Below the pieces are notes generated by a model, which saw only the letters and a program-made list of their open reading frames with translations, ran no database searches and was not told the origin of the DNA. A stretch of DNA of 64,000 nt from Tubulanus polymorphus (Eukaryota > Animalia > Nemertea), in contig NC_134030.1 of NCBI RefSeq assembly GCF_964204645.1, positions 9,823,222-9,887,221 of the forward strand, read 5' to 3'. Every line of letters begins with the position of its first letter. Position 1 is the first letter of the stretch. The translations under genes and the position numbers were made by a program. Shown here piece by piece: positions 18,152-60,700 of this stretch.

Positions 18152-20950
18152 CTATTTCTGCAAGAAATTTAAATCGTAATCAAACAATATGAAATCGGCT
18201 TTGTATTCTTCATACAAATCATCGATCAATTTTTGAGGAAGGTCTTTGTAATATTTGTTCAACTTTTCTGAGGAATATGTATGAGGGAGTGTGGCCGTTT
18301 TTGCCAGTTCCGGTTCCAGGTGGAAACGATTTTGAACAAGTTTGAAATCATTTTCGACCGTATCTCCGTATTTCCCGATGAAACTGTAAGCAATATCGCA
18401 TGGACGACAAAGCCTTTCGTATGATGCCCAATGTATATCATCAACATAATGAAGAAGGATGAACTCAGCGAATTCTTTAAACGTTGCTCTGTCTCCAGGT
18501 TTGACATCATTTCGGGCTGACCGAATAATCATTGGCTCGAGGTCTGCGTATCCTTTATCGTATTTACGCACAATTTTATCCAAATACGCAGATAACAGTC
18601 TCTCAAAAGGATGTCGTACGAACAGAAATTTGAAGTAGGTTTTTAAGCGTTCGGTTTTTTCATCTTGAGAATAACTCGATAGTGGCCTGATTAAATCTAA
18701 CGACGTTAAGTAGATACTTTGTTTCGTGTCAAGGTTATTTATGAGGGATAGGTTTGTCGTGCGAAGTTTTCCGGTCGTGTGTAGTAACGTGTATCTCCAT
18801 ATCGACGTGCCCACTTTGGGAATTTCGCAATAAAGGATCTTGTGTACGTCATCGACCGTAAATCTCTTGTACGTGTACGTGTATGGACCTAGAAAAGATA
18901 GCGAGATATGTTTCGAAATTAAACACTCGAGACTTAATGACACGATGGAGAGTCCCAGGCCACAAACATTCATCCCACCTGTCGATGTATTGGTTAGTTT
19001 TTCACATCCTGATTTTACATGCGCGAGTCTCTGATGATAGGTAGCATTCCAATCACGAATTTTACTGTTCTGTGTCTGAAATATACATGTACGTATATAG
19101 ATTTTACCAGCGAAGCGATCGACTTTTATTGTTTAATGTAGATTTCCACCGTCACATTCAAGTCGCCTGCAGCGGTTTATATCGTAGTAGTGGAGAGGTT
19201 GGACGCGCTGGCCTTTCCATTATGGACAGAACTATATTCGTCTAAAAGTTGGACCATACCACAATGCACAATGCATATTTGAAATATTGCAAATGTTCAT
19301 TAGGTTTATTCCGGAAAATTTACGAAATATCACAACGATGAAATTGAATGGGATTTGAATTTGGTGGAATTGAATTACAGTATTGCCAGATTTGAAATGC
19401 TGGTTAATCTAAAACAAAACTCCTGTTGTGACATTCTAGGATCTGAAAACAACCTGGAAATTTCGTGAAGGTCCGTTAAGAAACTTTTTAAGATATTCTT
19501 GAGGAAGAAAAGAACATGGGAATGAGAAACAATGGAGTTTCTGCAGAAACCGACACGCTTTGTGTAGCAGTGAATTGAATGTCGTGGCGTGTGGCGAGAT
19601 AAAGATCAACCAACGTGTATAATTTTTTTTGGGAAAAATATAGAAAAGAGATTGTACTGATACTGATTTCACTGATCTGATCACAGAGCCACCACAGCTG
19701 ATACAACATTAATATCTACTCTTTCTTGGCAGCTTTTTTTTTCATTTGAACATAAAGGAGTGCATTAGTATGGATCTAACGTGGCGTTACACCGTGTTAT
19801 GTAAAACAATTTAATTGGTACAGTCTCATATATTTCAATACAGAAATATCAGTCAGAAACTTAGTGTTAAAGGCTGATATGCGCTTTGTGAGAAGAAGAA
19901 GTCGGTGAAACGTACTCTTTATTGGTAATGTACAAAACTGAGACTAATCACCCATTTTTAAGTAACTAAGCTTGGTATGGTTTTATGAATCTCGTTATAT
20001 ACGCCGGGTCGATCCGTTAGATCTGTTATACAGGTCCAGTCAGGCCACGCAAAGATAATGGCTTGTTTCCCACCAGTTTCATTTTCCCCGCGCGTCAAAA
20101 AAGGTTCGTCAGTAGGTAATAGAAATAAAAATGAAAGTGAAAAAAAGTAAAAATAAAGAATAGTCGCCCTCGTCACTTTCGGAATTTGGAAAAAAGGCTT
20201 TCTACATCTCTCTTCTTTCAAAGAGGGAGGTAAAAATAAAAACCTGCTGTATTTTTTTGCGTGGCTTTCACTGTGCCACGAACACAACAACCTAGGTTTT
20301 GGTGACCGTTCTTTTGCGCAAGGTGCAAGGCGTACCTCGTATGAAGAATGCGCAGGCCAGGTCATTTAATGCTTTCAAATGTGCATTGAAGATTCATCTT
20401 TTACCTTATTGCTCTAATTCTGGTTTTTGTATGGCCAGATTCTATTTCGTATTACATTTTAATTGTATCTTAATTGTATTTCTCTTTTAGATTCTATAAA
20501 GCGCTTTGGAGCCTTTATAAGAATGAGGCGCTGTAGATAAATGCCGCGTCTATCATCATTTGTGTACAAAAGTTCTTAGTTAATAAGTCGAATAGTTTTC
20601 AGTTACAAGATTTTCAATATTCAAAATTCGAGTACTCCAATTCGTGCATTCTAGTGTGAAATAATCCACGTTTTGTTTCGTCTATCCGCACACCTTGTTA
20701 TGATTATTTTCTTCCATATGTTTTCTTTTGCAGTTTATACACAACAAGAACATTTTTGAGAATATCATTCCGAGTTAGCTGTGTCGGAATACAAACTATA
20801 GTTTCTCAAATGTAGTGTCCTATTCGAGAGTTAACAATCTATATTTACCTTTATTTTTGCACCTACATCGATTACATTTCGAAAGAGATAAAGAATGACC
20901 AGTGTCACTACTGTTGGAATTGCCAGCGACCACGCTTTAATGCGCAACAT
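18152..20950 (-). CDS. Carbohydrate sulfotransferase (Sulfotransfer_2, CHST11/CHST8-14-like), copy A, 311 aa; exons 20950-20849, 19075-18979, 18888-18152
   Basis: 5'-PSB motif IPKVGTSIW, 3'-PB motif FVRHPFERLLSAY, HW..Y...C.PC and C-terminal Y..DF.LF.Y. Type-II anchor exon MLRIKAWSLAIPTVVTLVILYLF. Stem exon ..HQRLAHVKSGC. GT-AG introns in matching phases (0, 1). AATAAA lies just after the stop. Confidence 0.9.
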
Positions 20951-24760: not shown

Positions 24761-25250
24761 TTTCAACACACTCACTATATAATCGATTATTCGTGAAATG
24801 ATGCATTAACAAGCAAATTCTCGGAGGTTACTTGCAGTCCAATATATGAGATACGAAACATTGTGTGGCAAATGCCAATGGTCAAAATTTGATCGATTAA
24901 CGCGAAAAGATAAAAAACCTAATTGAATTTGGTATGATAATCATTTTCACTGGAGGTTTAGCATTGACCCGCAACTCAGTCAATACAACGCTAATAAAAC
25001 GTCTCCTCATTGGTGGTCCATTCAGTCTTTCCTATTCAGAATGGTCTTACGAATATAATATGATACAAAGCGCACAATAGAATAATGAAACTGTTTGTGC
25101 GGAGATTTAAGTTGGGCGGACGTAGAACAACGATTTGAAGAATCGCAGCCATTCGACACGATAAGTTGAGCGATTTTGTCTGAATTTCAAGTACTTAGGG
25201 TTTTCGTCGTGTTCTTTGACTTCGGTGCGTCTGGCTCCACGGCTTTTTCA

Positions 25251-26333
25251 ATGTCTGATAACAACATCACTAGTACAAGCATTGCATTGACAACAACTCA
25301 GCTCATCACCTGGTGTTCAAAAAGAGAGAAAACACCAATCAAATGGATCAACAAATTCTGCGTATCAATATACTTAGGCTGGTATCTACCGGCGACTGTA
25401 TTCGGTTTGATATTCAACGCATTCACGTTGTTAGTTCTAAAACGGTTTGAATATGATAATTATTTTCTCATCAAAATTCTGGCTTTTACTGATCTTTTGT
25501 TTATGATCGCTACGTTCATTCTGTATCCGCTGAGAACTGCGTACGTTTACACCGTTTTGGGTGATATGGTATTTCGCTGGAATGACTGGAATTTTGGTAA
25601 GAGTTTTATCACGGTCTCTTTGCCGTTTTTCTACGTGTCTCAGATGACACGCAACTGGTGCACTGTACTGCTCAGTCTAGAGCGGTTGATCGTAGTATTA
25701 TTTCCACTGAAATCGCGTAAAATTCCCAAGAAGTTAATATCACAATGCGCAGTCATGTTCATTTCACTTTTGGGTTTTTGTGGCCATTTTATTCGCTTCA
25801 TACCTGAGCGTGAACTAGTATTTATCAATTGCCCGGATGAGTGGCCATATATTATGGTACTCGGTAGGTATTATCACTATCCCCAGTGGTTTAACCACGC
25901 AAGATGGCGTTACACAATCTCTGGAATCTATCTATCGATGTATCTTACTGTTATGATTCCAATTTGCTTTTTAGTTTTCATCAATGTTATCATTATTGCG
26001 GTGATATTTTTGCGTCGTATTACTCGACGTTCAGAGCTCGGTGTAAGTGATAAATCGTCCAGAAGGGAAATTAGGGTTTTAAGGATGGTTTTATCGGTTG
26101 TGTTTTTGTTTATCATCTGTGAAGGTTTTGGTTTTTACGAACGTTTAATGCATCTAGGTTATGTCCCATTTGTGCACACCATGAACCAGATAGCGATGGG
26201 ATTTTCTATCATCGATTCGTCAGGAAACTTCATCGTCTACTGCACGACGAATATTCAATTCAGGAAAGTAGCCATTGATATTTCAAGCAATGTCTGCCAC
26301 AAACAACGGGCTCCGCTGAATCGAAAACAATAA
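25251..26333 (+). CDS. Intronless class A GPCR, FMRFamide/peptide-receptor-like orphan (360 aa), paralog 1
   Basis: Seven hydrophobic segments; G..FN in TM1, LAFTD in TM2, SLERL (DRY equivalent), DSSGNFIVY in TM7; N-terminal NIT sequon. The first ATG is 25251 (the ORF track opens at an upstream TTG). Confidence 0.9.
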   Translation: MSDNNITSTSIALTTTQLITWCSKREKTPIKWINKFCVSIYLGWYLPATVFGLIFNAFTLLVLKRFEYDNYFLIKILAFTDLLFMIATFILYPLRTAYVYTVLGDMVFRWNDWNFGKSFITVSLPFFYVSQMTRNWCTVLLSLERLIVVLFPLKSRKIPKKLISQCAVMFISLLGFCGHFIRFIPERELVFINCPDEWPYIMVLGRYYHYPQWFNHARWRYTISGIYLSMYLTVMIPICFLVFINVIIIAVIFLRRITRRSELGVSDKSSRREIRVLRMVLSVVFLFIICEGFGFYERLMHLGYVPFVHTMNQIAMGFSIIDSSGNFIVYCTTNIQFRKVAIDISSNVCHKQRAPLNRKQ

Positions 26334-28599: not shown

Positions 28600-30875
28600 T
28601 CATAGATACTTATCTTGGGTTAACTTTAGATATTTACGTTGAAATACTGATAAACTAGTAGAATTACGAATCGGTTTAGGGATAGTATTCCAGAGAAGAG
28701 GTCCAGAAATCTTTACAGTGAATTGTCTAGAATTAGTTCTATAATTTGGCGGTCAAAAATTATCCATCGTCCGGGTGTTTCGATTGTGAATGTGATGACC
28801 GAGTTGCCAGTTCTTTGAAAAACGGTAGGAAGTTTTGCATTTACGAAGTTATAAACAAAGGAAGCTAGTTGTAATTTGTTGATATGTCCTAATTTCAATA
28901 TATTCAAACGGTTAAAAGTGGGGTCAGTATGAGCAAGGTACTCCGATTTACTGATTAAACGAATCGCTCTTTTTTGAAGAATAATTAAAGGGTTCAAGTT
29001 ACATTCGTAGTTTCGACCCCAGACAATGTTACAGAAAAATTGTAGAAAAAATTTGTAGAAGAGACTCGGTCAATCTCTTGGCCATCAATAGAGATTTGCG
29101 TATTACCAATATACGACTTACTGAATATAATGTAACATGTCTTTTTTATATTAATAGATAGCTTATTGGCACGAAACAAGATTACAAGATATTTCAATTT
29201 GATAATTCACAGTTGACAGTATTAACAAGACGATTAATATTTTGATCGGAATAGAAACAATTCGTGTCATCTGCGAACAAAATGAAATTTGAAATATCAG
29301 ATGAATTTGTACAGTCATTCATATTAGAAACAACAAAGGATCTAAGATAGAACCTTGGAGCACTCCAATACCAATACTAAGCGAAGTTGATTTAAATGCT
29401 TCAATTTGAACAATTTGACGACGGTTACTCAAGTATAGTTTTTGAACCACCAGTGCGTTACCTTTTATACCATAATGGTTTAATTTATGTAGTAAAATGC
29501 TGTGATTGACAGTATAAAAAGCTTTGGAGAGATCTAAAAATATCCCAATCGATGGTGTTTTTAGATTCAATATTAGCTGAAATTCTATCTATAATCTGAG
29601 TCAAAGCCATTGCTGTTGAGTGGTTTTTTTAAATCCAAACTGGTTGCTATTTAAGATTGAGAATTTATCACAAAATGAGGTTACTCTATTGTATACAATT
29701 TTTTCCAAAATCTTGAGAAAAAGGGTAGGATTGATATAGATCGATAATTATCAAAACAATGAGCGTCACCTTTCTTATAAAGTGGACGAACTCTGGCGAT
29801 TTTTAGTTCAAACGGAACAATACCTGATTGTAGGCTGCAATTAAATATATGAGAAAGTGGGTCTTTGATTGTGTCAATAATTTTCTTAATGATTTTCATT
29901 GAGATTTCATTAAGTTAAATTCATTGGCAATATTATAAGAACCACTTACGGCAGACCCATTCAAATAAAAAACATCTGGTAACTTTGAGTTCCTAGACGA
30001 TTTCCCAATAACCGAGTTAAGGACATTCCACATACCTTTCATGTTACCTTTGAAGAAATGCAATTTACGTTCATAATAATTTTTTTCTGCTAACCGTAGT
30101 AATCTACATAAGATGCGCTTATAGTCTTTATAACGTGTTTTTATCTCAGGGTCTGAATTACGCAAAGTTTTTCTAGACAAACTGTTCTTACATTTGATGG
30201 AATTAATTAAGCCGATTGAAAGCCATGGTTTCGACCATTTACTTTTTGATGTAGACCGTTGTTGGATGAACGGAAAACATTCATTTAAAGACTAGTAAAT
30301 TTGGATAGAAGTAATGAGTATGACAATCGAGGATCCATATTATCATAAATACTAGACCAGTCCACGGCTAATAAACATCTATAAAATCTTTGTACATTAT
30401 GATCACCCATATTTCTAGTGGGGGGTTGCGAACTATTATTATACACGATTTCGCATCCACTATACACAGTGAATACTGGGAAATGATCAGTGAAGTCACT
30501 ACAAAGAATACCAGATTTAAACTGTTTATAAATATCATTACTAAAAATGTTATCTATAATGGTGGAAGAAGAATTGGTTATCCTTGTTGGTTTATCAATA
30601 AAAGGGATAAATGACAAGGCTACCATATTATCAAGAAATACTTCTGCTGGTTTATGGTTATCAGCTTTTAATAAATCAATATTAAAATCTCCAAGAATAT
30701 AACAGATCTTATTCTCAGCATTGAGCTTATTCAACAAAGAATACAAATCATCATTAAAAGAACTAATATTAGATCCTGGCAGACGATATATTACACCAAT
30801 AATTTTATTTTTTGCCTTGCCACCATCAATTTCAATAAAAAGAGACTCAAAACTATTGTAAGCAGTAATATCCAA
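28600..30875 (-). mobile_element. Degraded CR1-group (Crack/Daphne/L2-like) LINE, endonuclease plus RT
   Basis: APE motifs IGVIYR.PG, LGDFNIDLL, PTR..IDNIF, DHFPVF. RT motifs NYRSISIL, DLSKAF, QGSIL, FADDT (~29265). Many frameshifts. Confidence 0.9.
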
Positions 30876-32321: not shown

Positions 32322-33262
32322 GCTTCGCGTAAATACCGCGCGGTGACGCAACCGCGCGGAGTGGGGCCGGTACGTCCAGAATACCAATTATTACTCCACA
32401 AACGCACGATAATGCCGTATACTGGACTAGCACCGAAGAGGGCAGTGCATTATGAATTGTTTGTCATCATCTATACAGAGCACTTTAGAGACAGCTGAGC
32501 ATTATTAGATACTATCTCCAACTGACATAATTGGTTAAACTGCTAGTGAAATACGTAGTTTCATCTGTTATGGATGTTGGTTTTATGTATCATTGCAAAA
32601 TATGCAATTTACATTATTTTCGCATCCATTTAGGCCTACCACGAATCATAGTAAAACATTAACATACGAAGCCTTCAATGAAATATATATCCAGTTGAAT
32701 AATGAGATGGGAAAATTTGTGTGGCAACTATGAATGGTCAAAATTCTATTTGATCATATCAACGCGAAAAGATACAAAACATAATTGAATTTGATGCGGT
32801 AATTATTTTCACGGGTCGTTTTAACAAAGCAAAATGTGTTCAAGTTTAATATACAAAATGTCTCAACAGAGATTGCGCTTTACAGCTCACTGGATGTTCG
32901 ATAACAGCATTAACTAGAACCGGTACCGCATTGACATTACCGCAAGTCCCAGTCACTATAGCGTTGATCAAACGTCTCCTCGTCGGTGTATCGACACAGT
33001 GTTTCGATAACGTATTCAGACTCATATAAAACGAATACCACGTTATTAATGAGCGCGCCATAGAATAAGCAAACTGTTTGTACGGAGGTTAAAGTCGGGC
33101 GCACGTAGACGTGCAAAAACACGAAACAAAAATAATTCGAAGTATCGCAACTATTCAACACGATTAGTGGAGCGATTTTGTGCCATTTTTAAGTACCGAG
33201 GGTTTTTCGGTTTGAAACGTGTTTTCCAACTGTTCTGGGCGTCCGGCTTTACAGCTTATGAG

Positions 33263-34345
33263 ATGTTTGATAACAACATTACTAGTACAATTCCTGCATT
33301 GACAACAACTCAACTCATCACCTGGTGTTCGTACAGGAAAAGAACACCAATTCAGTGGATCAACAAATTCTGCGTATTAATATACTTAGGCTGGTATCTA
33401 CCGGCAACTGTACTGGGTTTTATATTCAACGCATTCACGTTGTTAGTTCTAAAACGGTTCAAATCTGATAATTACTTTCTCATCAAACTTCTGGCTTTTA
33501 CTGATCTTTTGTTTATGATCTTTGCGTTCATTCTGTATCCGCTGAGAACTGCGTACGTTTACGCCGTTTTGGGAGATATGGTGTTTCGCTGGAATGACTG
33601 GAATTTTGGTAAGAGTTTTATCACAGTCTCCTTGACGTTTTTCTACGTTTCTCAGATGACACGCAACTGGTGCACTGTACTGCTCAGTCTAGAGCGGTTG
33701 ATCGTAGTATTATTTCCACTGAAATCGCGTAAAATTCCCAAGAAGTTAATATCACAATGCGCAGTCATGTTCATTTCACTTTTGGGTTTTTGTGGCCATT
33801 TTATTCGCTTCATACCTGAGCGTGAACTAGTATTTATCAATTGCCCGGATGAGTGGCCATATATTATGGTACTCGGTAGGTATTATCACTATCCTCAGTG
33901 GTTTAACCACGCAAGATGGCGTTACACAATCTCTGGAATCTATCTATTGATGTATCTTACTGTTATGATCCCAATTAATTTTTTAGTTGTCATCAATGTT
34001 ATCATTATTGCGGTGATATTTTTGCGTCGTATTACTCGACGTTCAGAGCTCGGTGTAACTGATGAATCGTCCAGAAGGGAAATTAGGGTTTTAAGGATGG
34101 TTTTATCGGTTGTGTTTTTGTTTATCATCTGTGAAGGTTTTGGTTTTTACGAACGTTTAATGCATCTAGGTTATGTCCCATTTGTGCACACTATGAACCA
34201 GATAGCGATGGGATTTTCTATCATCGATTCGTCAGGAAACTTTATCGTGTATTGTGTGACAAATGATCAATTCAGAAAAGTAGCCATTGATATTTTAGGC
34301 AATGTCTGCCACAAACAACGGCTTTCGACAAAACAGAAACGATGA
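33263..34345 (+). CDS. Intronless class A GPCR, FMRFamide/peptide-receptor-like orphan (360 aa), paralog 2
   Basis: Same length and motifs as paralog 1. ATG at 33263 (MFDNNITS). The upstream ~500 bp is also homologous to paralog 1's upstream region. Confidence 0.9.
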   Translation: MFDNNITSTIPALTTTQLITWCSYRKRTPIQWINKFCVLIYLGWYLPATVLGFIFNAFTLLVLKRFKSDNYFLIKLLAFTDLLFMIFAFILYPLRTAYVYAVLGDMVFRWNDWNFGKSFITVSLTFFYVSQMTRNWCTVLLSLERLIVVLFPLKSRKIPKKLISQCAVMFISLLGFCGHFIRFIPERELVFINCPDEWPYIMVLGRYYHYPQWFNHARWRYTISGIYLLMYLTVMIPINFLVVINVIIIAVIFLRRITRRSELGVTDESSRREIRVLRMVLSVVFLFIICEGFGFYERLMHLGYVPFVHTMNQIAMGFSIIDSSGNFIVYCVTNDQFRKVAIDILGNVCHKQRLSTKQKR

Positions 34346-36429: not shown

Positions 36430-37380
36430 TTATTTAAGTGAAGTTCTACAGCGGATTTTCATACAGAAATATTCACGAATTTCCCTTCCCAGTAAAAGAT
36501 ATATGTAAAAATTCACCACAAAATTGCAAACATGGAACTGAGTGAAAACGTCATATAGAAAATCTGCCAGTTCCGTTGGGATTGGTAAAAACGTAGTTAT
36601 AGTGGATGGAAGATTAAATATTGCAAATGCGAATGAAACTGTTACAAGCATTATTGTTGTACGTTTTGATTTTGTAGTTTTCTGATCAGACGAAACAATT
36701 TTTGAACCTCTGAATAACTGAACTATTATAACAGAATTTGATGTTACAATCAAAATCAAGGGTATGATGTGGAGGTGGATGTCAATTATGGTAAAATATG
36801 TTATTTGGTCAGATAACGCATAGTAACATCCGAAAGACAGGTCTGTCAAATGAATCGATAAAGCAGGTAAAAGAAGCATGACCAGTACATTTACTGCAAT
36901 GATCATCAATATAACGAATCTTGCGAATGTAGGTGTACATATCAAACGAGATGTGAACGGGAAGAGCACAACTGCCTCACGTTCAATAGTTATCGCTACT
37001 ATTAACCACGAACTATTGCTGACCGCAAGCCCCATTATAAATTCGTGGATTTGACAACTGATTAGTGAATTCATGATAAATATAGGAGCATCTTTAACGT
37101 GGAAGAGAACAAACTGTAAAACAGGCATTAGCGTATAACTGATGCAGATCGTGAAATCGCTGATGGCCAAAGCGATCAGATAGTTAGCGTAAGATAAACA
37201 GCAGAATCGGCGACTTATCATTATCAGGAAAGTAGCTGAATTCCCGAAAACTCCAAGCATGAACAAGGTTGGTAAAACGACCAATGACACAGTACGGTAG
37301 GTTCCAGATCTGTTTACCACGGACATAGGAATGATGTTACTGCTATAAGTTCGACCGATCTGCATCCGAGTGGAATTCAT
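36430..37380 (-). CDS. Intronless class A GPCR, divergent peptide-receptor-like orphan (316 aa)
   Basis: LGVFGN (TM1), LAISD (TM2), Cys at the top of TM3, TIERE (DRY variant), FAIFNLP (TM6), NFVVNFYIY (TM7); N-terminal sequons. Confidence 0.88.
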   Translation of the reverse strand: MNSTRMQIGRTYSSNIIPMSVVNRSGTYRTVSLVVLPTLFMLGVFGNSATFLIMISRRFCCLSYANYLIALAISDFTICISYTLMPVLQFVLFHVKDAPIFIMNSLISCQIHEFIMGLAVSNSSWLIVAITIEREAVVLFPFTSRLICTPTFARFVILMIIAVNVLVMLLLPALSIHLTDLSFGCYYALSDQITYFTIIDIHLHIIPLILIVTSNSVIIVQLFRGSKIVSSDQKTTKSKRTTIMLVTVSFAFAIFNLPSTITTFLPIPTELADFLYDVFTQFHVCNFVVNFYIYLLLGREIREYFCMKIRCRTSLK

Positions 37381-40370: not shown

Positions 40371-43300
40371 ATGAGCGAAAAACAAGATGCGAAAGAGAAA
40401 GAGAATTTGAAAACGGCGGCTCTTGACTTCGCTAATGAAACGAACTTCCACGGAGTGAAATATATCGCCCACTCGCCAACCTACTTCACTAGGTAAGTAG
40501 CTCATTCACCAACCTAATTTCAGAACTAGGTAAGTTTTCTCAAATGAGGTAACTATTACGTCTAATTACCAGTTCGATGTTGATTAACAATCACTGTTGA
40601 GTTAACTCATCATTTACTCTATCGATGTAATTTTGTTCTAGATCAATGTATTTTCCTGTGATTCGTATTTTCAAAGCAGTTGAAATAAATAACATGCGCG
40701 ATGCAAAAAAAGAACGTGAATACAAAACAACGGTTACAATGAAAATTGGGCACCGGTAATTTCGTGTTCAGGGAGGTGTACTGAACAGTCCCACATATGG
40801 TGCCAACATGCCATGCATAACAAACTAAAATTCCGAACATAAGCGAAATCCAGCGACTGCGAACCTACGGACTTCTGTGGCAATCGAGGATTCCTGAAAT
40901 TCGGACGAGGATCCACCAGGTTCGCTAGTAGTAACTCAGTCTTTTGCGATCGATTTCTTCTACATTTTAGATAAAACTGAATGAACTTGTTCTTACATTA
41001 GTCCAAATCCGAGTCTGGTTGATATCTGAGTCGAAAAAAGAAGTCACTGTATATTTGGTGGGTCCTGTTTTATTTTGATTTGCGAGCCTAAAAATTTAGT
41101 TCAAAGCTGAGTGCTCGCCATTATCCATCTGGCATGGATAGCTGTTGTTGTGGGTTCTCGTTGTAATTTGAACTACCGGTAGTAAAAAGTTTAATAAAAG
41201 TAGAAATATTTCGGATGCTTGCTCCTTCTGTATAAAATGGTATAATGTGTAATAGAAATGAACCTTAAATTTTTTTTTCTTTTTGTTATACTTATCATTT
41301 TAGACTGGTGACGAAGGGTGGTGTCAGTATCTAACCGAAATATTTCTGCTTAGTTGAAATAGATTTGATGATTCTTTATTCAGTGTTGATGATGACATTG
41401 ATACATAATTTGTGTACAGTGCATAATTCATGTCTAAAAAAAACTAATTTGAACACACACAACATTTGAACAACTGGTTATCAAAATCTTAAAATCTACC
41501 CTTGAACCTAAGAACGGTGGCTTTTTGTTTGTATGACTTTATAAAGTATTGTAATCCATTTCAGGTTGATTTGGTTGATATTATTTTTGGGGATGACCGC
41601 AGTACTATGTTATCAGATATATGATCGCACCACGTTTTATCTTTCGTGGCCTGTAACTTCTGTTATATCAATGGGAAAACCAGAAACCGGGGAAATCTCA
41701 TTCCCCGCTGTCACTATCTGTAATACAAACACTTTCAGGTATCGTCTTGCTTTCAATTACAAATGTTGAATTCGTAAACTACTACTGGCAAACTGTACAC
41801 TCACAATGAGCGAACAAGAAATAGTTTATAATTCATAACAATACCAGTACTCGAAATCATCCTCTGAACAAATGTGGATCATTGAATTTAATTGTTCAAA
41901 ACGATACATTTATTTATTATTTAAAATATTTATTTGTTACAAGTTGATTTGATGATAACATTGTAAATGAAAATAGACTTAAGTTTTTCTCTCGATTTTG
42001 TAAGAAACTGTCTTCGTTTAAAGGTTGTCTGATGTAGAAGCGGCCGGGATTTATGAGCAGATATCGGGATTTTACAGCGACAAAGGACAGAACTCTTCAT
42101 CAGCTTCTGTCGTACCAATTGATTTACACTATTTGATGTTAAACATGAGCCACAAAATAGAAGATTCAATCAAAGAAGCGTCGTTTCAATGCCAAGAATT
42201 GAGTACGAATAATTTCACTGCGATATTTACCGATTACGGCTTGTGTTATAGTTTCAACGTCGACCCATCGCGACAGGTTTCCTCACGAGGAACGGGTAGG
42301 TTTTAGAAAAACTAAGAATCATTAAGACGCCTATCAAACGCATGTCAAACACGAAAGGGCAGCACTTGTAGACAATGAAATAGTTAAGACCAATAGAATG
42401 TAATATAGAACTGTAAAGCTGTATCGGAATAAAGAAGTTTCAAGTTTCTATAGGCGCCATTTTGTGGCGGTCCCTCGAGATCCCCATTTTTGCGATAACT
42501 TCGTCCACGCTTTTTTGAAACATAAGTTTAGATTGAATTCCAAATAGCGCATAGAAACATGAAATTTCGTTATTCTACACAAATCGTTTGGATTATTTTC
42601 AAGGCCAAATAATTAGGAAAGTTCATGATCATGGTGTATTGCAAGTTTTTCGTATGTTACTTTATGTCAGAAGTCAGTCAGAATAGCAAATAAAGCAAAT
42701 AAGCAAAATGAAAAACACTTATCACACTGATGTATGCTAATGAAGCTATATGAATATTCATTAGGTATCGCATTCGGATTGAGTCTATTGGTAAATCAGG
42801 AGACTTATCAGACAATGAGAGGTGAACACAAGGCATCGGGATTACGGGTTCTCGTTCACGATAAGAACGAAGTTCCTCGAGTAAAAGATCTGGGACTTTT
42901 TGTACCCGCAAAAATGACGGCCATTGTTGGTATCAATACGCTACAGGTAGGGGAAAACTGGACATTGACACTGCACAATTATTTGTTAAAAGCGATTGAA
43001 AATTAAATTGTCGAATTTTTGGTGATTCGTTTCGGGATGTTGTCTATACATTCGGGGCCCGTTGTACAGTCGTGACTTATACCCAACAGTGGTCTCCAAA
43101 TCTCGAAACCGGTCTTTTGTTGTTAGATTGCCCATATTTAATTAAGGTCCTAAACTTACGCCATGACTGTTCAACAGACCCCTGAAATAGGAGAAAATTT
43201 GGTGGATTAAAATGTGAAAAACTGTATTGGAATATGCGTGAGCAATTGATTGATTTTTCAGACGACTGAACTACCTTATCCGCACGGTACCTGTAAGCAT

Positions 43301-46300
43301 GGCGTCGCTTCGTTAGAAACGTGTTTGAGACAATGTCACATTAGAATAGCTGGCGATGTTTGTCGGTGTTTGCCTTATTACGCAGAACTAAATCAATTCG
43401 ATGGAATGCCATACTGCAGCATGAAAAAACACCGCGATTGTATGCAACCAGAACTGTGTACGTTTTAATCATTTAAGCGTTTGTGAATATTTACTTAAAC
43501 TCAATATTCTTTCTATGTGGTTAAACTACGCAAATCTGCTTTTGAATTTCCATAACGAATACCTCTCTGAATCACTAAATCACTATTACTGCTATGTTTA
43601 ACAGGCGCCAGTTCAGTTGTTCAAAAGTTGGTTAGAGTTAACCAGCGGATAGTTGATTTAGTGACAATTAAAAGTTCTTTGTTACTATATGGTATTTATC
43701 CGCTGGTTATCTTTTAAGCATCTTTTTAGCAACTGACCCGGCTCCTGACTATATCATTTACAGAAAATGTGTACACATTACTTCGTACAAATTAACTATA
43801 ACATTTGCATATTGTATGTAGTTACAGTAAAACAGAACGCGTTTTATTGAATGCTAAGTTTTTCAGAGTAAGTTTAATTAGATATTCTTAATTTATATTT
43901 CAGCCGAAGTAACACGGAATTCATCATCAATTTGTAATTCGGAATGTTCAATTCCTTGCGAGAAAATCTCGTACGATTCGCAAATTAGTTATTCGTCGCT
44001 ATCGTCCTATATGGCTAAAACAATATCGGCCAAATACAGCAAAGAAGAAACTCTGGTCTCCGACTATCAGACTTCAATCGACGCTTTACATCGGGTCGAC
44101 TCGAAAATAAAAACCAAAGACCTCGAGATAATCTCGAAATTCAACGACGATTTGGTCGACATCAAATCGCAAATAGATGATTTGGTGACGTTTCTGAAAG
44201 TCGAAACCGATACGGTCAGCGCTGCGTCGACGAATATGTACAACGCATTATGGATTATCGTGAAAGAACTGGAAAAAACAAAGAAAAACTATATAAAAGT
44301 ATCGGCGGTTGATCGAGTGGAACCGATGATTTTAACTCCGTTAGCCGAATTCAGACAAGCGTTAAAGTTAGAGGTTCCACCGCTGTTAGGTATAATGGAA
44401 GACTATCTGTTATCACAGATAGGAACGAAAGATGAATATCTTGAAAGCTCCGAAAAAGTATTCGATATTTTCGATCGAATTTCCGACGTTCAATTTCGAG
44501 TCTATAATGAATTTCATGACGTCTATCTGAGTCTGAAAGAAGAGAGCGAAAAACCGAAAGACGCGGATCCCTTGAGGCGTTTTCCTGCTGTATTACTAGC
44601 CGACGAGCTGGGAAAGATTAAAGGAACTATAGACCAACTTGCGGATGGAACGAACGCTTTGATTGCGGTTTCGAACGAAACTGCTAAAAAAATCCGGGCT
44701 TTCGAAACCCAATCGCCGACTGCGTCCGAATGGGCGGAGTTTGAAAATTCGATTCAAAACTACACGAACTACGCTAGCGATATCGGCGATACCGCTTTGA
44801 CACTTTCCGATAGACTCGAGTATATTCTAACGGCTGTACAAGACACGGTGGCTAAAATTAACACTCATCAATTAGCTATTGACTTCGCGTACACTAGATT
44901 AATGAATGCTCTTGACTACATTCAGCCAGATCCGTCGACAGATATCGATCTGCAAATAATCATAGACGAGGCGGACAAAAACTTTTCTCGACGTTTTCAA
45001 AATGTAACCAACAACGGTGAAGTCATCGGGAGGATGACGGACGTTCTAGAAGCGTGTGAGGAGATTTATCTCATCGAAGGCTTGCTATGGATATTGGACG
45101 ATTTTTTGACGTATGAGATTCCATCAATCACATCGGCCTATCAAGAACTTAAAAAGTAACGTATCCAAGTGTGAACTGATTTGAATTTAATTTCTTTCCG
45201 TAATACTCTGTCGGCTTTCGGCAATGGTGGCCCTGGCAGCTGCCATAATAAAAAGATGTTAATCATAGGTTAAAAATCTAAAAGTTACGGAAGTGTCCTG
45301 GGGACATGAAATGAAAATATCTTCAGAATTAATTCTGATTAGATAAAACGTGTTTTTTAACTAGATTTACTCCCAGATGGTATCTCGGAATGAAATATCC
45401 AACATCGAATAAAAATCAAAATTTCCGAATCAAGTTATCCGAATGAAATGAAACTTGTAAGAGTAAAGAAAACGTTTTCCGTATTAATTCCAAGATGATA
45501 TCTCGGAGTTATATCAAAAAACTATTTCATTCTAATATATAATACTTTATTCCGATATATTCTTGGATGTAATCGGAGCAAAATCAGTGGGCAGCCACGC
45601 GTGACGCCCGAGGCGGACAGATTACCGGATCGAACCCCGTCCGTTCGAAGTTTTCACGTAGTCGATCAACTTGATTTTAGGCTCCCGAATCCAGTTGTTC
45701 ATTAAACGAATCATCGACTAGCAATAGATTTACTTTCCCCTATGTTTTTGGTATTGTTTTCACTGATTTTTATGTTTTAAGAGATACTAAATGTACATCT
45801 GATGCCCAAATTTTCAGAATTTTCTTTTGAGCAGGGCTTTTCAATCGGCTAATGAGTACTTGGATATGAAAGTAGTAGGGGTTTCAACATTTCCATCAAC
45901 GAGTGAAATAGCAACTCGAATCATACCGACAATAGGAAGCTTTGTCAGCAACGCCGAAGAGCAAACTGAATTTATCAGCACGATGGCTCGCACTCTGAAG
46001 TCGGCGCACAGGAAAACAACTGAATCAAAAATCAAACTTGTTGAACACATGAGAAAATTTAATGAATCGATACAAATCGATGAAACCTTCATTCGGTAAG
46101 TGAGAGCCGGTGGTATTTTCAAAAAGCAACTAAAACACGAATCAAGTTTTTCATTCTATGAATCTTCTTGCATCGCAAACAACAGGTACAGACAGCAGGT
46201 CGTCTGAGAGGATACAGGGTACAGACAGCAGGTCGTCTGAGGGGGTGCAGGGTATACAGACAGCAGTTTGTCTGAGAGGATACAGGGTACAGACAGCAGG

Positions 46301-47329
46301 TCGTCTGAGAGGATACAGGGTATTGACAGCAGGTTGTCTGAGAGGGTGCAGGGTACAGACAGCAGATTGTCTAAGAGGGTGCAGGGTACAGGCAGCAGGT
46401 TGTCTGAGAGGGTGCAGGGGATACAGACAGCAGATTGTCTGCGAGGGTGCAGGATGTTTTGGAATACAGGCAGCGGATTTGCTAAGGGGTTTGGCGCATA
46501 TAGCGGATTGTCTGAGGGGGAATTGAGGGCCAGACAGCTGTCTAAGCGGTCTCAATTCGAGCCTCTTTTGGGTCAAAAGAGCACACGTACTCTTTAAGAT
46601 CTGTTTTTCTCATCTCAATTTTCAGAAATAACTTTGTTTATGTAAACGTTTTCTTTCGAACGATGGAAATTCAGAAATTGTCGAAATCGGAAGCGTACTC
46701 TTGGTTTTCATTAGTTTGTAAGTAACAACAAATTAGAAAATTTTTCCTTCCATTGTTGAACAATAACCATCGATGAAATGCTCTTAGTCCCTAATATAGA
46801 AAATCCCAAATTCAGAAAAGAAAAACGAGTTGGGTTTGTTTAGTAAACGATACATTTTCCGGGTTTTGACTATATCAATCATTTTGAGATTAGAAAGAAT
46901 TCCATATTCCTGATGATGCAGTCAAAACTTCGAAAGTAGATCATTAGCTAAAGGAAACTTTTTCGGACTTTCATTTTTTTTTTCTTTTCTGAGTGTTTGA
47001 TTTTCTATATCATAATTGAGTATATAAGGTTTTTCTTCATTTCTGACAAGAAGGCTTAACAAACGATCATACAACAGCAAACAGATCATCAAATCGATTG
47101 GAAACAGTTAACACTTTCGTAACTAATGTCATGATTGTATTGAACAGGTGATATTGGTGGAACCGCCGGATTATATCTCGGTGCGTCTTTACTGGCGCTT
47201 GTTGAGGTTTTATTTTTCGTCGGGAATCAAATGATCAATTCATTCGCGCGAAACAGAAACAAACCGAACGAAGTAAATCCACATCCGGATTATGTCGTCA
47301 GAAGGAGCCCGGTGACCACAATTATGTAA
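40371..47329 (+). CDS. DEG/ENaC (ASIC/FaNaC superfamily) sodium channel subunit, ~910 aa, with giant knuckle insertion; exons 40371-40492, 41565-41738, 42024-42295, 42765-42946, 43262-43457, 43904-45155, 45835-46095, 46626-46717, 47148-47329
   Basis: Pre-TM1 HG motif (TNFHG), TM1 LIWLILFLG.., FPAVTICN, GLCYSFN, GLRVLVH, 10-Cys thumb, NFVYVNVFF, and TM2 CDIGGTAGLYLGAS with the GAS filter. All eight introns are GT-AG with matching phases; total 2733 nt. The exon 7 acceptor (GAGCAG at 45834) is the least certain junction. Confidence 0.88.
43904..45155 (+). CDS. Large internal exon 6 of the DEG/ENaC gene (end of thumb, beta10, and most of the helical insert)
   Basis: Begins ..ICNSECSIPCEKISYDSQISYSSLS and runs open into the 382-aa ORF 44011-45159. 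Donor is AA|GTAACG. Confidence 0.85.
46186..46520. repeat. ~33-bp intronic tandem repeat, ~10 copies
   Basis: Unit GACAGCAGGTCGTCTGAGAGGATACAGGGTACA within intron 7 of the channel gene. Confidence 0.9.
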
Positions 47330-47480
47330 AACTCAACGGGATAAATCTATTCGAGTTAGACACGTATGAAGAATGAACCCCCAGCAAAGTGTACGTTCAC
47401 TGCATTCGGTACCACGGGGCGGTAATTATTTCAACAAGTTGAGAATCAGGGATTTCAGTAGTGCTATGACTGCTATACAT

Positions 47481-49290
47481 ATTTCACCGAGATAATCAGG
47501 GAACTCGGTAGCGTTGAGCATGCTGTAAATATTTCATCGAGACCATCAGGGAACACGGTAGCGTTGAGCATGCTGTGAGTATTTCACCGAGACAATCAGG
47601 GAACACGGTAGCATTGAGCATGCTGTAAATATTTCACCGAGACAATCAGGGAACTCGGTAGCGTTGAGCATGCTGTAAATATTTCATCGAGACCATCAGG
47701 GAACACGGTAGCGTTGAGCATGCTGTGAGTATTTCACCGAGACAATCAGGGAACACGGTAGCATAGAGCATGCTGTAAATATTTCACCGAGACAATCAGG
47801 GAACTCGGTAGCGTTGAGCATGCTGTAAATATTTCACCGAGACAATCAGGGAACACGGTAGCATTGAGCATGCTGTAAATATTTCACCGAGACAATCAGG
47901 GAACTCGGTAGCGTTGATCATGCTGTGAATATTTCACCGAGACAATCAGGGAACTCGGTAGCGTTGATCATGCTGTGAATATTTCACCGAGATAATCAGG
48001 GAACACGGTAGCGTTGAGCATGCTGTAAATATTTCACCGAGACCATCAGGGAACACGGTAGCGTTGAGCATGCTGTGAGTTTTTCACCGAGACAATCAGG
48101 GAACACGGTAGCATTGAGCATGCTGTAAATATTTCACCGAGACAATCAGGGAACTCGGTAGCGTTGATCATGCTGTGAATATTTCACCGAGACAATCAGG
48201 GAACACGGTAGCGTTGAGCATGCTCTAAATATTTCACCGAGACCATCAGGGAACACGGTAGCGTTGAGCATGCTGTGAGTATTTCACCGAGACAATCAGG
48301 GAACTCGGTAGCGTTGAGCATGCTGTAAATATTTCACCGAGACAATCAGGGAACACGGTAGCGTTGAGCATGCTGTGAGTTTTTCATCGAGACAATCAGG
48401 GAACTCGGTAGCGTTGAGCATGCTGTGAGTATTTCACCGAGACAATCAGGGAACTCGGTAGCGTTGAGCATGCTGTGAGTTTTTCACCGAGACAATCAGG
48501 GAACTCGGTAGCGTTGAGCATGCTGTAAATATTTCGACGAGACAATCGGGGAACACGGTAGCGTTGAGCATGCTGTAAATATTTCACCGAGACAATCAGG
48601 GAACTCGGTAGCGTTGATCATGCTGTGAATATTTCACCGAGACAATCAGGGAACACGGTAGCGCTGAGCATGCTCTAAATATTTCACCGAGACCATCAGG
48701 GAACACGGTAGCGTTGAGCATGCTGTGAGTATTTCACCGAGACAATCAGGGAACTCGGTAGCGTTGAGCATGCTGTAAATATTTCACCGAGACAATCAGG
48801 GAACACGGTAGCGTTGAGCATGCTGTGAGTTTTTCATCGAGACAATCAGGGAACTCGGTAGCGTTGAGCATGCTGTGAGTTTTTCACCGAGACAATCAGG
48901 GAACTCGGTAGCGTTGAGCATGCTGTGAGTTTTTCACCGAGACAATCAGGGAACTCGGTAGCGTTGAGCATGCTGTAAATATTTCGACGAGACAATCGGG
49001 GAACACGGTAGCGTTGAGCATGCTGTGAGTATTTCACCGAGACCATCAGGGAACACGGTAGCGTTGAGCGTGCTGTAGATATTTCACCGAGACCATCAGG
49101 GAACTCGGTAGCGTTGAGCATGCTGTAAATATTTCACCGAGACAATCAGGGAACTCGGTAGCGTTGAGCATGCTGTAGATATTTCACTGAGACAATCAGG
49201 GAACACGGTAGCGTTAAGCATGCTGTGAGTATTTCACCGAGACCATCAGGGAACTCGGTAGCGTTGAGCATGCTGTGAATATTTCAGCGA
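47481..49290. repeat. 50-bp minisatellite, ~36 copies
   Basis: Unit ATTTCACCGAGACAATCAGGGAACTCGGTAGCGTTGAGCATGCTGTAAAT with exact period 50 and no unique spacers. Confidence 0.97.
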
Positions 49291-50281
49291 GTTAACAATC
49301 AGTGAACTTTGTAGCGCTAAGACTGATGTCTATATCTCACCGAGTTGCCAATCGAGGGAATGGATTGAATATTGTTTTAACTGGACTGAATTCTAGAAAC
49401 ATTTGCGACTTGCGAACGAAGAATTGGAGCGACTTTCTGTAAAGTAAAAACGTCACGTTTGACGGTGAATTGATGTACAATATGACGCATGTTAACAATA
49501 CGTGTGAAATCTATGAATAAGGTAAATTTTAAGTGGACTGTATTGACGATAGAGTGGTAAATTACTTTGAAATTGTCTGCTTTTAATATTTTCATATTTC
49601 GCTGTAAAGTTTAAATTGACCGAATAAAAACATAGCATAATAGAAATAGATTATTTTGGATTTTTTGTCTCCTCAGTGAGTCTGGACAGAACCCGTTCTC
49701 CGTTTGTGTTGGTGTTAGGGAGTCGATTAGGATTTCAGATGAAATGCACTGCCCAGTGTACCGTATGGTGCTGCCGCTATGGTCATCGTTAGCGGTTTTT
49801 CACGCACTAACACCGACAGATTCTGACAGGTTGATAACCGATTTCAGTTTTTCATTTCAAAACTATAATACATCATCAAGATCTTAGATTATCGAATGTG
49901 AAAGAATGTCACTATAGTCGTTCATAGTGGTTTATGAAAGTAGTGAGGCAGCATGATAACTGGGGTCTGTCCATCTTACGTAATAGTGCATGAGAAAATC
50001 CGGCGCTGTCGATAAGCATAGCGGCAGGACCCCAAGGCGAAGTGTGTGCCTGAAATAGTATTGCCTCTATCGTGTATGTGACAATAGAGCACAAATGAAT
50101 CCTTTAAAGGAACCGATCGCGATAGATTGAACACGAACAATAGATAGTAATCGACTTTTTTATTTTATCCGATGATCGATTTTTTCTACCGGCCGCAGTC
50201 ACCCGGAAGTAGTACAGGAATATAAACAAATTGGCGGCTTTTTGAATCGCGGGGATTACGGTTCAGGGTTTAGGGTCTACA

Positions 50282-57738: not shown

Positions 57739-60700
57739 CTATTTCTGCAAGAAATTTACATCGTAATCAAACAATATGAAATCGGCTTTGTATTCTTCAT
57801 ACAAATCGTCGATCAATTTTTGAGGAAGGTCTTTGTAATATTTGTTTAACTTTTCCGAGGAATACGTATGAGGGAGTGTGGCCGTTTTTGCCAGTTCCGG
57901 TTCCAGGTGGAAACGATTTTGAACAAGTTTGAAATCATTTTCGATCGTATCTCCGTATTTCCCGATGAAACTGTAATCAATATCGCATGGACGACAAAGC
58001 TTTTCATATGGTGCCCAATGTTTATCATTATAACTATGAAGAAGGATGAACTCAGCGAATTCTTTAAAGGTTGCTCTGTCTCCAGGTTTGAAATGATTTC
58101 GGACTGACCGAATAATCATTGGCTCAAGTTTTGCGTATCCTTTATCGTATTTACGCACAACTTTATCCAAATACGCAGATAACAGTCTCTCAAAAGGATG
58201 TCGTACGAACAGAAATTTGAAGTAGGTTTTTAAACGCTCGGTTTTTTCATCTTGAGAATAACTCGATAGTGACCTGATTAATCCCAATGATTTGACGTAG
58301 ATACTTAGTTTCGTGCCAAGGTCATTTATGAGGGATAGGTTTGTCGTGCGAAGTTTTCCGGTCGTGTGTAGTAAAGTGTATCTCCATATCGACGTGCCCA
58401 CTTTGGGAATTTCGCAATAAAGGATCTTGTGTACGTCATCGACCGTAAATCTCTTGTACGTGTACATGTATGGACCTAGAAAAGATAGCGAGATTTGTTT
58501 CGAAATATAACACCCGAGACCTCATGACACGATAGCTGAGAGCCCCAGACCACAAACATGTCCCATCCGACGTATGTGTATTTTCATACCTGTCGATTTA
58601 TTGGTAAGTTTCTCACATCCTAATTTTATATGAGTGAGTCTCTGATGATAGGTAGTATCCCAATCGCGGATTGGCGGACGATTTCTATCATTCTGTGCCT
58701 GAAATAAACATGTACGTAATATAGATTTTACCAATCGATCGAATCAATCGACTTTCATTGTTGATTTCTAGTGTCGCATTCAAGTCGACTGCTGCGGTAT
58801 CTTACAAAAAAAGAGAAGTCGGACGTACTGGCCTTCGCATTATGAACACTACATATTTATCTAAAACCTCGACTGTACCGCAGACTTGGCATTCCAGTGC
58901 TCCGTAGTTTCGGAAGATTGACAATATTGACAAATGCTCATCGGGTCTATTCCAGTAAAATTACGAGACAATAAAATCGCACAGCAATGAAATGATTTTG
59001 GATTTTGGTGGAATTGTAAAATTCCAACTGAAATGCTGTTGTATTTAAGTGGCTGCATTGTCGAAAAATAACTAGAAAATTTGTATGCAAAGCATAACTG
59101 ATTGTAGGCTTGTAGAAAATATGGATCTAGATACGAATTTTGGAAATGATAAGTTCAAGCATAATTGAGATACGGGCGAGCGCAACGAAGACTGATCTGA
59201 TGGGGCATCAATCGAGTCTTATTTGATAAAAACTAATTTTAGTGATGATATCAGCGTGTAACAGAAATACATACGTTTTCACCCGATCGGAATATGAACT
59301 TATTCAATTTTATTGATTGCTATTTCATATATGGTAGAGGGTACACACGTTTTTACGGAGATGGCTGCATCTGTATTTCATAGTAGATAACGCCGATTAA
59401 AATGTGTTTTTCTTTTTCGCAGGTGTCACCCTGTGTTTTATGCCTTTACTAGGTCGACTGTATGGTAATATAGATTTCCGTGCGGTACTTGGCCTACTTA
59501 TTGAAAATTTGGAAAATTGTGTTGATTTGAATAACATTGGTATTCTACTATATGTTTTCCGGTCTTTGTTTTGAATAACTTAATTCTCCTTTCAAATTTT
59601 CGATCACTCTCTCAGTCCCATTGTTTGATTCTCGTTTGAATATACGTGTATATGCAGTTATATCATTCGCTATTCAGCACGCCTGATGATGGTTAGTCTT
59701 AAGCCGTAACTCTGCTCGAAATATTCATTTTTCACCATGTCACCTCCGGGGCTCCGTATTCTTGAATAGAATTGTATGATTATATATTCTATTTTATTTA
59801 TTTATCCATCATCATAGTCAATGTCTTTCATGGTGGATATATCCACGTACAAAAGAATATAATGTACATGTAAAACACCGATATCAGAAAATATAATGTC
59901 ACAGACAGTACAAGTAGGTTTTTCAGACATAATATCGAAAGAATCTATATTTTTGATTTAAGTTTAGTAACTTCATTTGAAAAACATTTCATACAACCCT
60001 GGAGTTTAGAAGTTCTTAATGAAAGGAGTTCAATAAATCTAAAAACACTAAGCCTTTTCCAGTAAAATCTTGGTATGTTTCTTCCTAATAGAGCTGAAAA
60101 AAGGACAGATCATTGTATGATGATATTCATCTTCGATTTCTCGCAAGTTACAGTGTTCGCAATCTTTTATTCTTTGGTATGGGGAGGTTCGTCCATCTCT
60201 AATACCTCTTTTAAGTCATATGTTGAAGTTCCAATTCGGCAGAGCGATTCAACAGCATATGAGGAACAGTTTTCTGAATAGTTTTCTGGACCAAATGACA
60301 ACTTTGTATGTTTATAGTAGTAACATTTTGAAGAATTCTCTAAATAAGACTGCCAGGATTGTATGAAATTGTCACGAAGTGTACTTTCTATAGATTTAAT
60401 AAAAAGGTTCTCATTGGATACTTCTATACTAATGTATGCCAGACGTAACTAAAGCCTAAATGGTCTAACAAGGATTTCAGATAGAAAGTTTCTTTGTCTA
60501 TGATCCGTTTCAAGGTCTTGATTCATGATAGCCAAGGAAAATTTATGAGAACTACTGCCAATGTTAATAAAACATTAAGCTTTCAATTCAGTGACATCAT
60601 ACATTTTTCATGGGCTTAAAACAATTAAAATCGCTATTAATGAATTCAGAAAAGTGATTAATTTTAAGTTCATTTCATTACATATAATGAATATATCAAG

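Follow-up and report, generated by a model that had tools for sequence, protein, structure and literature searches.

A long, predicted helical domain in the knuckle of a DEG/ENaC channel gene of the nemertean Tubulanus polymorphus

A stretch of 64,000 nucleotides from the genome of the palaeonemertean Tubulanus polymorphus (contig C6, positions 9823222-9887221, hereafter the window) carries a gene of the DEG/ENaC channel family in which several hundred residues stand in the middle of the extracellular knuckle. The knuckle forms the top of the ASIC/ENaC trimer, adjoining the finger of the neighbouring subunit. The locus raises the question of whether the gene is an intact channel gene, whether the additional segment belongs to its protein and how old it is, and what such a segment could do there. 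We consider it probable that positions 40371-47329 (+) hold an intact DEG/ENaC gene with a folded, all-alpha domain of about 445 residues placed between the knuckle helices alpha6 and alpha7, and that this domain characterizes an old, maintained spiralian subfamily; an extracellular sensor stalk is our leading suggestion for the mechanism, held with low confidence.

The nine exons of the gene add up to 2733 nt, corresponding to 910 codons and a TAA. No internal stop was present when stop codons were counted over the spliced nine-exon frame, all junctions are canonical (GT...AG), and the exons are colinear in tblastn with two T. polymorphus proteins from the databases. The exons were searched singly rather than as a joined protein. 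Exons 2, 3 and 4 each exceeded the curated cut-off of the Pfam family ASC (PF00858; 56.9, 30.1 and 34.6 vs 23.6 bits), and exons 5 and 6 matched the same profile below the cut-off, in the correct profile order. Among the hallmarks of the family, we recognized the HG motif NFHGVKYI in exon 1, the first transmembrane segment (TM1, IWLILFLGMTAVLCYQIY) in exon 2 followed by FPAVTICN, a Cys-rich thumb, and the second transmembrane segment (TM2) with its GAS filter (LYLGASLLALVEVLFF, including LYLGAS) in exon 9, the translation of which carries GDIGGTAGLYLGASLL and then the stop. Exons 5 to 8 read, in order, CRCLPYY, CSMKKHRDC, CNSECSIPC, ISYSSLS, the insert, and IDETFIR NNFVYVNVFF, that is thumb, beta10, knuckle and beta11-beta12; the same order was confirmed against ASIC5 for the paralog P0002. 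The paralogs P0001 and P0002 both carry PF00858, and the best solved relatives of P0002 were ASIC5, ASIC2 and ASIC1 (from 4e-44, for ASIC5, to 7e-34), with FaNaC and ENaC ranking behind them. The insert-bearing channels group by sequence with ASIC, BASIC and DEL-9/DEL-10-type channels, a clade as in PMC9822975. The Tubulanus relatives in the databases are automated RefSeq models (XP_074652827, XP_074658670, XP_074657246 and XP_074641359), two of them named 'degenerin-like protein del-10' and the others 'uncharacterized'. Judged by sequence, the window gene encodes a subunit of the DEG/ENaC or amiloride-sensitive sodium channel family and falls in the ASIC/BASIC-like branch; the ASIC resemblance is an overall similarity to ASIC5, ASIC2 and ASIC1, and the gene is not filed as an ASIC proper.

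Exons 6 and 7 together encode the roughly 445 extra residues. Exon 6 (43904-45155) lies behind the acceptor ...tttcag and starts with EVTRNSSSICNSECSIPCEKISYDSQISYSSLSSYMAKTISAKYSKEE; its opening supplies the last thumb cysteines, beta10 and alpha6 (CSIPCEKISYDSQISYSSLSSYMAKTISAKYSKEE), and the insert follows directly in frame, for 368 further residues up to the donor AAAAA/GTAACG at 45155/45156. At the stop-codon frequency of the window, a frame of 417 codons would stay open by chance with a probability of about 2e-11. Exon 7 (45835-46095) adds 86 whole codons and ends with IDETFI(R), and exon 8 opens with NNFVYVNVFF. In the alignment of P0002 to the solved ASIC5 chain, residues 27-375 matched chain residues 38-406 and residues 815-880 matched 402-467. 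Since the break falls at 375/815 in the query and at 406/402 in the chain, about 440 residues are inserted at a point where ASIC5 has essentially none. The window channel thus shares with ASIC and BASIC (ASIC5) structures (9mky, 6l6p, 6ave, 2qts) the HG motif, TM1, palm, beta-ball, finger, Cys-rich thumb, knuckle and TM2 with GAS filter, and differs from ASICs, which have about 30 residues between beta10 and beta11, by a separate helical domain.

The insert has an isoelectric point of 4.4, a single Cys and the glycosylation sequons NET, NYT, NFS, NVT and NES. A preliminary description of the locus had claimed a DEG/ENaC gene with intact HG motif, TM1 and GAS filter, bearing an acidic in-frame knuckle insert of about 440 residues with one Cys and five sequons, and had placed exons 6 and 7; its coordinates and frame were right by splice sites and translation, and these other statements hold with the Pfam ASC matches, the motifs, the ASIC5 break and the composition given above. 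By topology, the insert would be extracellular and leave the channel at the knuckle, and it is a separate domain as large as the remaining extracellular part. Pfam returned nothing over the cut-off for the insert, neither with the window exons nor with 22 inserts, and hhalign of its segments detected no internal duplication or repeat.

A TAA at 45157-45159 overlaps the donor of exon 6. The junction 45155/45835 preserves the frame (AA+G = Lys); with the nearer acceptor at 45817, read directly, the frame would hit a stop. Paralogs that encode the insert in a single exon align gaplessly over the junction, so that the proposed splice restores a continuous sequence, and the RefSeq model of P0001, a 74% identical paralog, uses the equivalent junction. 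These two lines are the best available support for the splice model, which had been proposed earlier and agrees with the RefSeq paralog models and with the single-exon paralogs.

The window gene is one of many. With its insert as a query, ten loci were found in its own genome, and a profile made from those ten matched 18 loci end to end: nine in tandem at C6:7.11-7.18 Mb, two at C6:2.30-2.33 Mb, two at C4:5.44 Mb, the window itself, and one each at C4:8.83 Mb, C2:26.1 Mb, C10:10.0 Mb and C8:15.2 Mb. More divergent inserts occur at three loci on C11 and one at C2:1.5 Mb, and a further type, similar to an oyster insert described below, at five loci on C1 and C6. At least 27 Tubulanus loci thereby carry an insert of 440-540 residues at the same site, with 14-77% identity. 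At every insert locus the open frame starts with CxxxC....Y and beta10, and the insert ends, where this was read, in the alpha7 motif (...I.I.E.F[IVL]x) followed by a phase-2 donor. Most paralogs encode the whole insert (470-540 residues) in one giant exon, and the RefSeq models P0001-P0004 (861-937 aa) include it. Ordinary DEG/ENaC genes with a knuckle of about 50 residues exist in the same genome, for example at C3:5.63 and C3:7.37 Mb. As every genomic match starts at the channel CxxxC/beta10 motif, no free-standing or transposon-borne copy of the insert was found among the genomic matches, all of which lie in frame inside DEG/ENaC genes. The single graft pictured in the preliminary description is thus replaced by a gene family; the insert-only search that it had proposed placed all genomic copies inside DEG/ENaC genes, and the match to a transposable-element protein that it had named as fatal did not appear in Pfam.

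The tandem group is compact, with nine insert-bearing DEG/ENaC genes on both strands within 66 kb (C6:7109340-7175136; loci L012, L015 and L020-L026). A near-identical second copy of the window gene lies on another chromosome, at C4:8827994-8832139 (locus L002; protein identity 97%, dS 0.035, intron 6 identity 95%) and is a recent duplicate or possibly an assembly duplicate. Intron 6 was found only in a subgroup of four genes (the window gene, L002, L003 and L004); since the other paralogs and the oyster gene, also with a single-exon insert, encode this part in one exon, intron 6 looks like an intron gain inside the giant exon. No tRNA or SINE-like (short interspersed nuclear element) sequence was found in intron 6, which is not a repeat family.

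A homologous insert was found in the oyster Saccostrea echinata, in the DEG/ENaC model XP_061183628.1. This protein came up as the third match of a word-indexed search, and its insert was recognized by reading the sequence: about 455 residues stand between CPVPC.../beta10 and ...IDSSFIK DNF. Compared with the Tubulanus locus on C1, the oyster protein aligned from the CPVPC motif through 400 residues of the insert, with 22% identity (E 2e-17), and here too the insert is encoded in one giant exon. It occupies the same alpha6/alpha7 site as the Tubulanus inserts of C1 and C6 and is homologous to them; it cannot be aligned with the window type past about 55 residues, and it comes from an automated model with a truncated N-terminus. 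The oyster scaffold JAVQLB010000025.1 (L046:1-1694, 10001-14523) encodes XP_061183628.1 without its N-terminus, and a TM1-like exon lies 8 kb upstream, matches P0002 residues 67-108 and is annotated as a separate 126-residue product. The oyster gene has probably been split in two by annotation.

The insert types are related at their beginnings. The oyster-like and window types have their first ~55 residues in common, with the motif Y..ARE.L.R.D..... (hhalign 96%, 4.6e-09), and the window and C11 types their first ~120 residues (hhalign 98%, 6.8e-15). The simplest reading of these sequences would be one ancient insertion followed by fast divergence. The insert was found in one nemertean and one oyster. 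An exhaustive phmmer search with the window insert returned four cluster representatives, all from Tubulanus; because it missed known paralogs of the same genome, this result is not evidence of confinement to a single species. Word-indexed protein searches returned essentially the queries only, did not recover P0003 and P0004, and are uninformative on distribution. Given the at least 27 paralogous genes and the homologous oyster insert, the insert is, as judged by sequence comparison, an old and selectively maintained part of a spiralian channel subfamily, older than the nemerteans.

We also compared substitution patterns among four close paralogs. The ratio of non-synonymous to synonymous substitution rates (dN/dS) was 0.28-0.40 in the insert part of exon 6, vs 0.13-0.19 in the short channel part of the same exon, and 0.18-0.50 in exon 7. 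In genomic runs of a second individual or haplotype, all eight indels were intronic, with exons making up 44% of the compared stretch; the listed exonic single-nucleotide polymorphisms comprised 8 synonymous and 9 non-synonymous changes. These coding sequences indicate that the insert is under constraint and exon 7 under purifying selection.

To describe the fold, the paralogs P0001 and P0002 were used in place of the window protein. AlphaFold2 on residues 279-772 of P0001, with 22 paralogs as the alignment, gave an entirely helical model (mean predicted local distance difference test score, pLDDT, 86.7; predicted template-modelling score, pTM, 0.69). Its helices span model residues 21-31 (alpha6), 35-51, 53-120, 122-157, 162-202, 215-255, 260-325, 340-360, 380-425 and 427-485, and alpha7 follows the last of them after a break of four residues. 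The full-length model of P0002 showed the same helix pattern (pLDDT ~90). The eight to nine long helices may be read as two stacked four-helix bundles, one long and proximal and one distal, with both chain ends at the base. In agreement with this description, model residues 111-299 superposed on four-helix bundles (Z up to 16) and residues ~62-480 on a second four-helix bundle. Over the whole domain (residues 46-488), shape matches were obtained with the bacterial sensor domains of McpZ (8f7n), McpS (2yfa) and TorS (3o1h) (Z 9.6-10.9), and the alpha-pore-forming toxin subunit AhlB reached a whole-domain Z of 11.3. Searches of the ESM Atlas by features and by shape returned only unrelated bacterial helical proteins with template-modelling scores below 0.5. 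On the predicted structure, the insert is a domain with no matching Pfam family and no convincing solved fold. The helical tower of the preliminary description stands insofar as the segment is predicted to be all-helical and is extracellular by topology; the model gives no support to one tower shared by the trimer, since AlphaFold2 builds for each insert a self-contained intramolecular bundle, and not a heptad coiled coil that would need three chains.

How could such a domain serve a channel? In our proposal, the chain would rise from the knuckle along a helix of about 68 residues and form the distal four-helix bundle, return down a helix of about 66 residues, close the proximal four-helix bundle with two more long helices, and re-enter the channel through alpha7 after the break of about four residues. 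Each subunit would then bear its own rigid stalk atop the trimer, with a height that we estimate from the helix lengths at about 100-150 Å. In ASICs, alpha7 runs into the palm strands beta11-beta12, which control opening and desensitization, and the linker between the two strands governs desensitization. The stalk could act as an extracellular sensor or antenna, in which a bound ligand or partner would shift the last helix, almost continuous with alpha7, and this shift would act on the beta11-beta12 strands. Conservation within the insert is highest at its base, beside alpha6, and where the two bundles join. Because the last helix is nearly continuous with alpha7, the base and joint are conserved, and the family is large, tandem and fast-evolving, an extracellular sensor that modulates or drives gating appears from the model to be the most likely role, although we hold this with low confidence; we place a tether second and a role in assembly or as a spacer third. 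It is a tentative suggestion that the knuckle stalk is a receptor module that confers on this spiralian subfamily a mode of gating not known in DEG/ENaC channels, in which a macromolecular or small ligand, or a pull, would act at the trimer apex and its effect would travel through alpha7 to the beta11-beta12 gate.

Several observations weigh against this picture. Foldseek against the PDB, a check that had been called for in the preliminary description, found nothing for the insert at E ≤ 0.001, with a chemoreceptor sensor domain as the best, non-significant row. All whole-domain Z values are under 13, within the common range of helical bundles, for which the aligner notes give a Z of ~13 as the background level. 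The folding and structure searches used P0001 (74% identical) and P0002 as stand-ins for the full window protein, and the channel part of the full-length P0002 model is unreliable (pLDDT below 50), so that how the three inserts are oriented, how tall they stand and how far apart they lie is inferred, not modelled. Alignment between the main, C11 and oyster-like types fails beyond the first third of the insert; for the domain as a whole, common descent is argued from its position, its length and the N-terminal part that the types share. Finally, the three matching public sequencing runs are genomic only, their contigs pass the introns without joints, and a putative RNA run of the species gave no match; the splice junctions of the window gene are thus predicted from genomic comparison.

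Some DEG/ENaC channels, such as MEC-4/MEC-10 of C. elegans, are mechanically gated and have extracellular partners. A mechanical tether, in which the stalk would anchor the channel apex in extracellular matrix or a cuticle-like material, pass force to the gate and so make these channels mechanosensory, would be well placed at the apex of the extracellular domain, and the long rigid helices are predicted to be joined to alpha6 and alpha7 by very short linkers. However, a set of at least 27 copies that diverge fast, with nine in a tandem array, resembles a receptor repertoire more than a tether to a common matrix, and no matrix-binding domain or Pfam family is detectable in the insert. We regard this explanation as unlikely.

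The stalk might also have a structural or assembly role without any part in gating, for instance in spacing, shielding, adhesion or the choice of the paralogs that co-assemble into trimers. So many paralogs could form heteromers, and the higher dN/dS of the insert compared with the neighbouring channel segment is as expected for a recognition surface; the conserved base and bundle joint, by contrast, fit mechanical coupling better than a free surface, and we think this role less probable again than a tether. An annotation artefact or dead gene, with a transcript ending at the TAA at 45157, the segment spliced out, or a nested gene or transposon open reading frame (ORF), could appeal to a stop codon directly after exon 6 and to junctions drawn from genomic data, but it is very improbable and already close to refuted by the same in-frame arrangement in the whole Tubulanus family, most members of which have no intron or stop there, by the open exons 7-9 with exon 7 under purifying selection, by genomic matches that all begin at CxxxC/beta10 with no match to a transposable element or another Pfam family, and by the same arrangement in the oyster. 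As separate candidates for the source of the insert, a transposable-element or viral ORF was rejected (no Pfam match, all copies inside DEG/ENaC genes, intron 6 sequence not repeated), and a nested gene or read-through is very improbable in view of the in-frame paralog family and the oyster homolog.

The sensor stalk favoured here has partial counterparts in other systems. The ENaC GRIP domain, the finger insertions of FaNaC and the Cys-rich domains of nematode degenerins are likewise function-specific extracellular additions that control gating; they belong to the finger region and are either much smaller or rich in Cys, whereas the Tubulanus insert is in the knuckle and predicted to be all-helical. 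Additions of this kind in DEG/ENaC channels include a protease-released inhibitory tract and a peptide-binding site. The sensor domains of McpS, TorS and McpZ are elongated stacked four-helix bundles with ends at a membrane-proximal base and a last helix that leads into the signalling part, and by analogy with the proposed mechanism, bacterial chemoreceptor sensors pass the signal along the final helix. The likeness is one of design and not of membership, as there is no sequence or profile similarity and the host here is a loop of a eukaryotic channel, not a transmembrane helix pair. The bacterial 4HB or HBM chemoreceptor sensor domain was accordingly rejected as an assignment (no Pfam match in 22 inserts, no Foldseek match at E ≤ 0.001, Z 9.6-10.9).

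The features of the window gene are collected in Table 1.

Table 1. Exons and selected segments of the knuckle-expanded DEG/ENaC gene (window coordinates)
Feature	Position	Strand	Content	Basis
Exon 1	40371..40492	+	Start codon, cytoplasmic N-terminus, FHG (HG) motif	ORF MSEKQ...NFHGVKYIAHSPTYFTR; donor ACTAG/GTAAGT; tblastn to P0002 residues 16-51
Exon 2	41565..41738	+	TM1 and post-TM1 FPAVTICNTN	Pfam ASC 2.5e-15; tblastn to P0001 residues 1-49, 88% identity; splice sites
Exon 3	42024..42295	+	Finger / beta-ball	Pfam ASC 3.5e-07; tblastn; splice sites
Exon 4	42765..42946	+	Palm / beta-ball	Pfam ASC 1.5e-08; tblastn; splice sites
Exon 5	43262..43457	+	First part of Cys-rich thumb	Pfam ASC below cut-off (E 0.0024, 17.4 vs 23.6 bits); tblastn to P0001 residues 199-266, 82% identity; donor T/GTACGT, Ser codon shared with exon 6
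Exon 6, first 146 nt	43904..44049	+	Last thumb cysteines (CSIPC), beta10 (ISYSSLS), alpha6 (MAKTISAKYSKEE)	Translation; Pfam ASC profile positions 354-397, below cut-off (E 0.0078, 15.7 bits); paralog-ASIC5 alignment to the same point
Exon 6, remainder	44050..45155	+	First 368 insert residues	Open frame; homologous to at least 18 paralogous loci; dN/dS 0.28-0.40; AlphaFold2 on paralog P0001 all-helical, pLDDT 87
Intron 6	45156..45834	+	Splits the insert; only in the four-paralog subgroup	GT...AG; same donor sequence in L001-L004; absent in single-exon paralogs; not a repeat family; indels of second individual here
Exon 7, first part	45835..46060	+	Last ~75 insert residues (predicted final long helix)	Profile positions 404-488; gapless alignment to single-exon paralogs; dN/dS 0.18-0.50
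Exon 7, end	46061..46095	+	alpha7 (NESIQIDETFIR)	Paralog equivalent aligns to ASIC5 NQSRKYIRENL; donor TTC G/GTAAGT, phase 2, as in all paralogs
Exon 8	46626..46717	+	beta11-beta12 (NNFVYVNVFFRTMEIQKLSKSEAYSWFSLV)	Sequence; splice sites; tblastn to P0001, 83% identity
Exon 9	47148..47329	+	TM2 with GAS filter (CDIGGTAGLYLGASLLALVE), C-terminus, TAA stop	tblastn to P0001, 85% identity

Around the channel gene, the window contains repeats and several other open frames. A 33-bp minisatellite of 8 copies occupies 46185-46453 in intron 7; as contigs of the sequencing runs pile up there with rearranged joints, it is a dispersed or variable repeat. About 140 bp past the channel stop codon, a 36-copy tandem array of a 50-bp unit (47471-49291; 91% matches) yields a regular series of spurious minus-strand ORFs of 41 aa. 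Upstream of the gene lie three intronless open frames of rhodopsin-type G-protein-coupled receptors (25176-26333 (+), 33167-34345 (+) and 36430-37380 (-)), with Pfam 7tm_1 and weak Srx/Srsx chemoreceptor-like matches. Two Sulfotransfer_2 open frames flank the region (18152-18973 (-), E 2e-43; 57739-58467 (-), E 1e-44), and a weak endonuclease/reverse-transcriptase match (Exo_endo_phos_2) at 30285-30875 (-) is probably the remnant of a long interspersed nuclear element.

Neither full-text literature searches nor surveys of the DEG/ENaC family mentioned a knuckle insertion or nemertean channels of this form. Within a known channel family, the window gene represents a variant that is real, conserved and apparently not described before. 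Members of this family respond to stimuli as diverse as protons, peptides, bile acids, proteases and force, and their known extracellular specializations concern mainly the finger, the thumb and the acidic pocket. The insert described here stands one short linker away from the gating strands and has been retained across dozens of genes and two phyla, and it may represent an as yet unexplored link between an external sensor and the pore. A stalk that could be removed, or swapped between paralogs, would provide a natural modular system, and the insert can serve as a marker for tracing a spiralian channel subfamily that seems to be missing from surveys of the family. If the proposed sensor role is true, the large and fast-diverging tandem repertoire of Tubulanus would be a set of chemosensory or recognition receptors.

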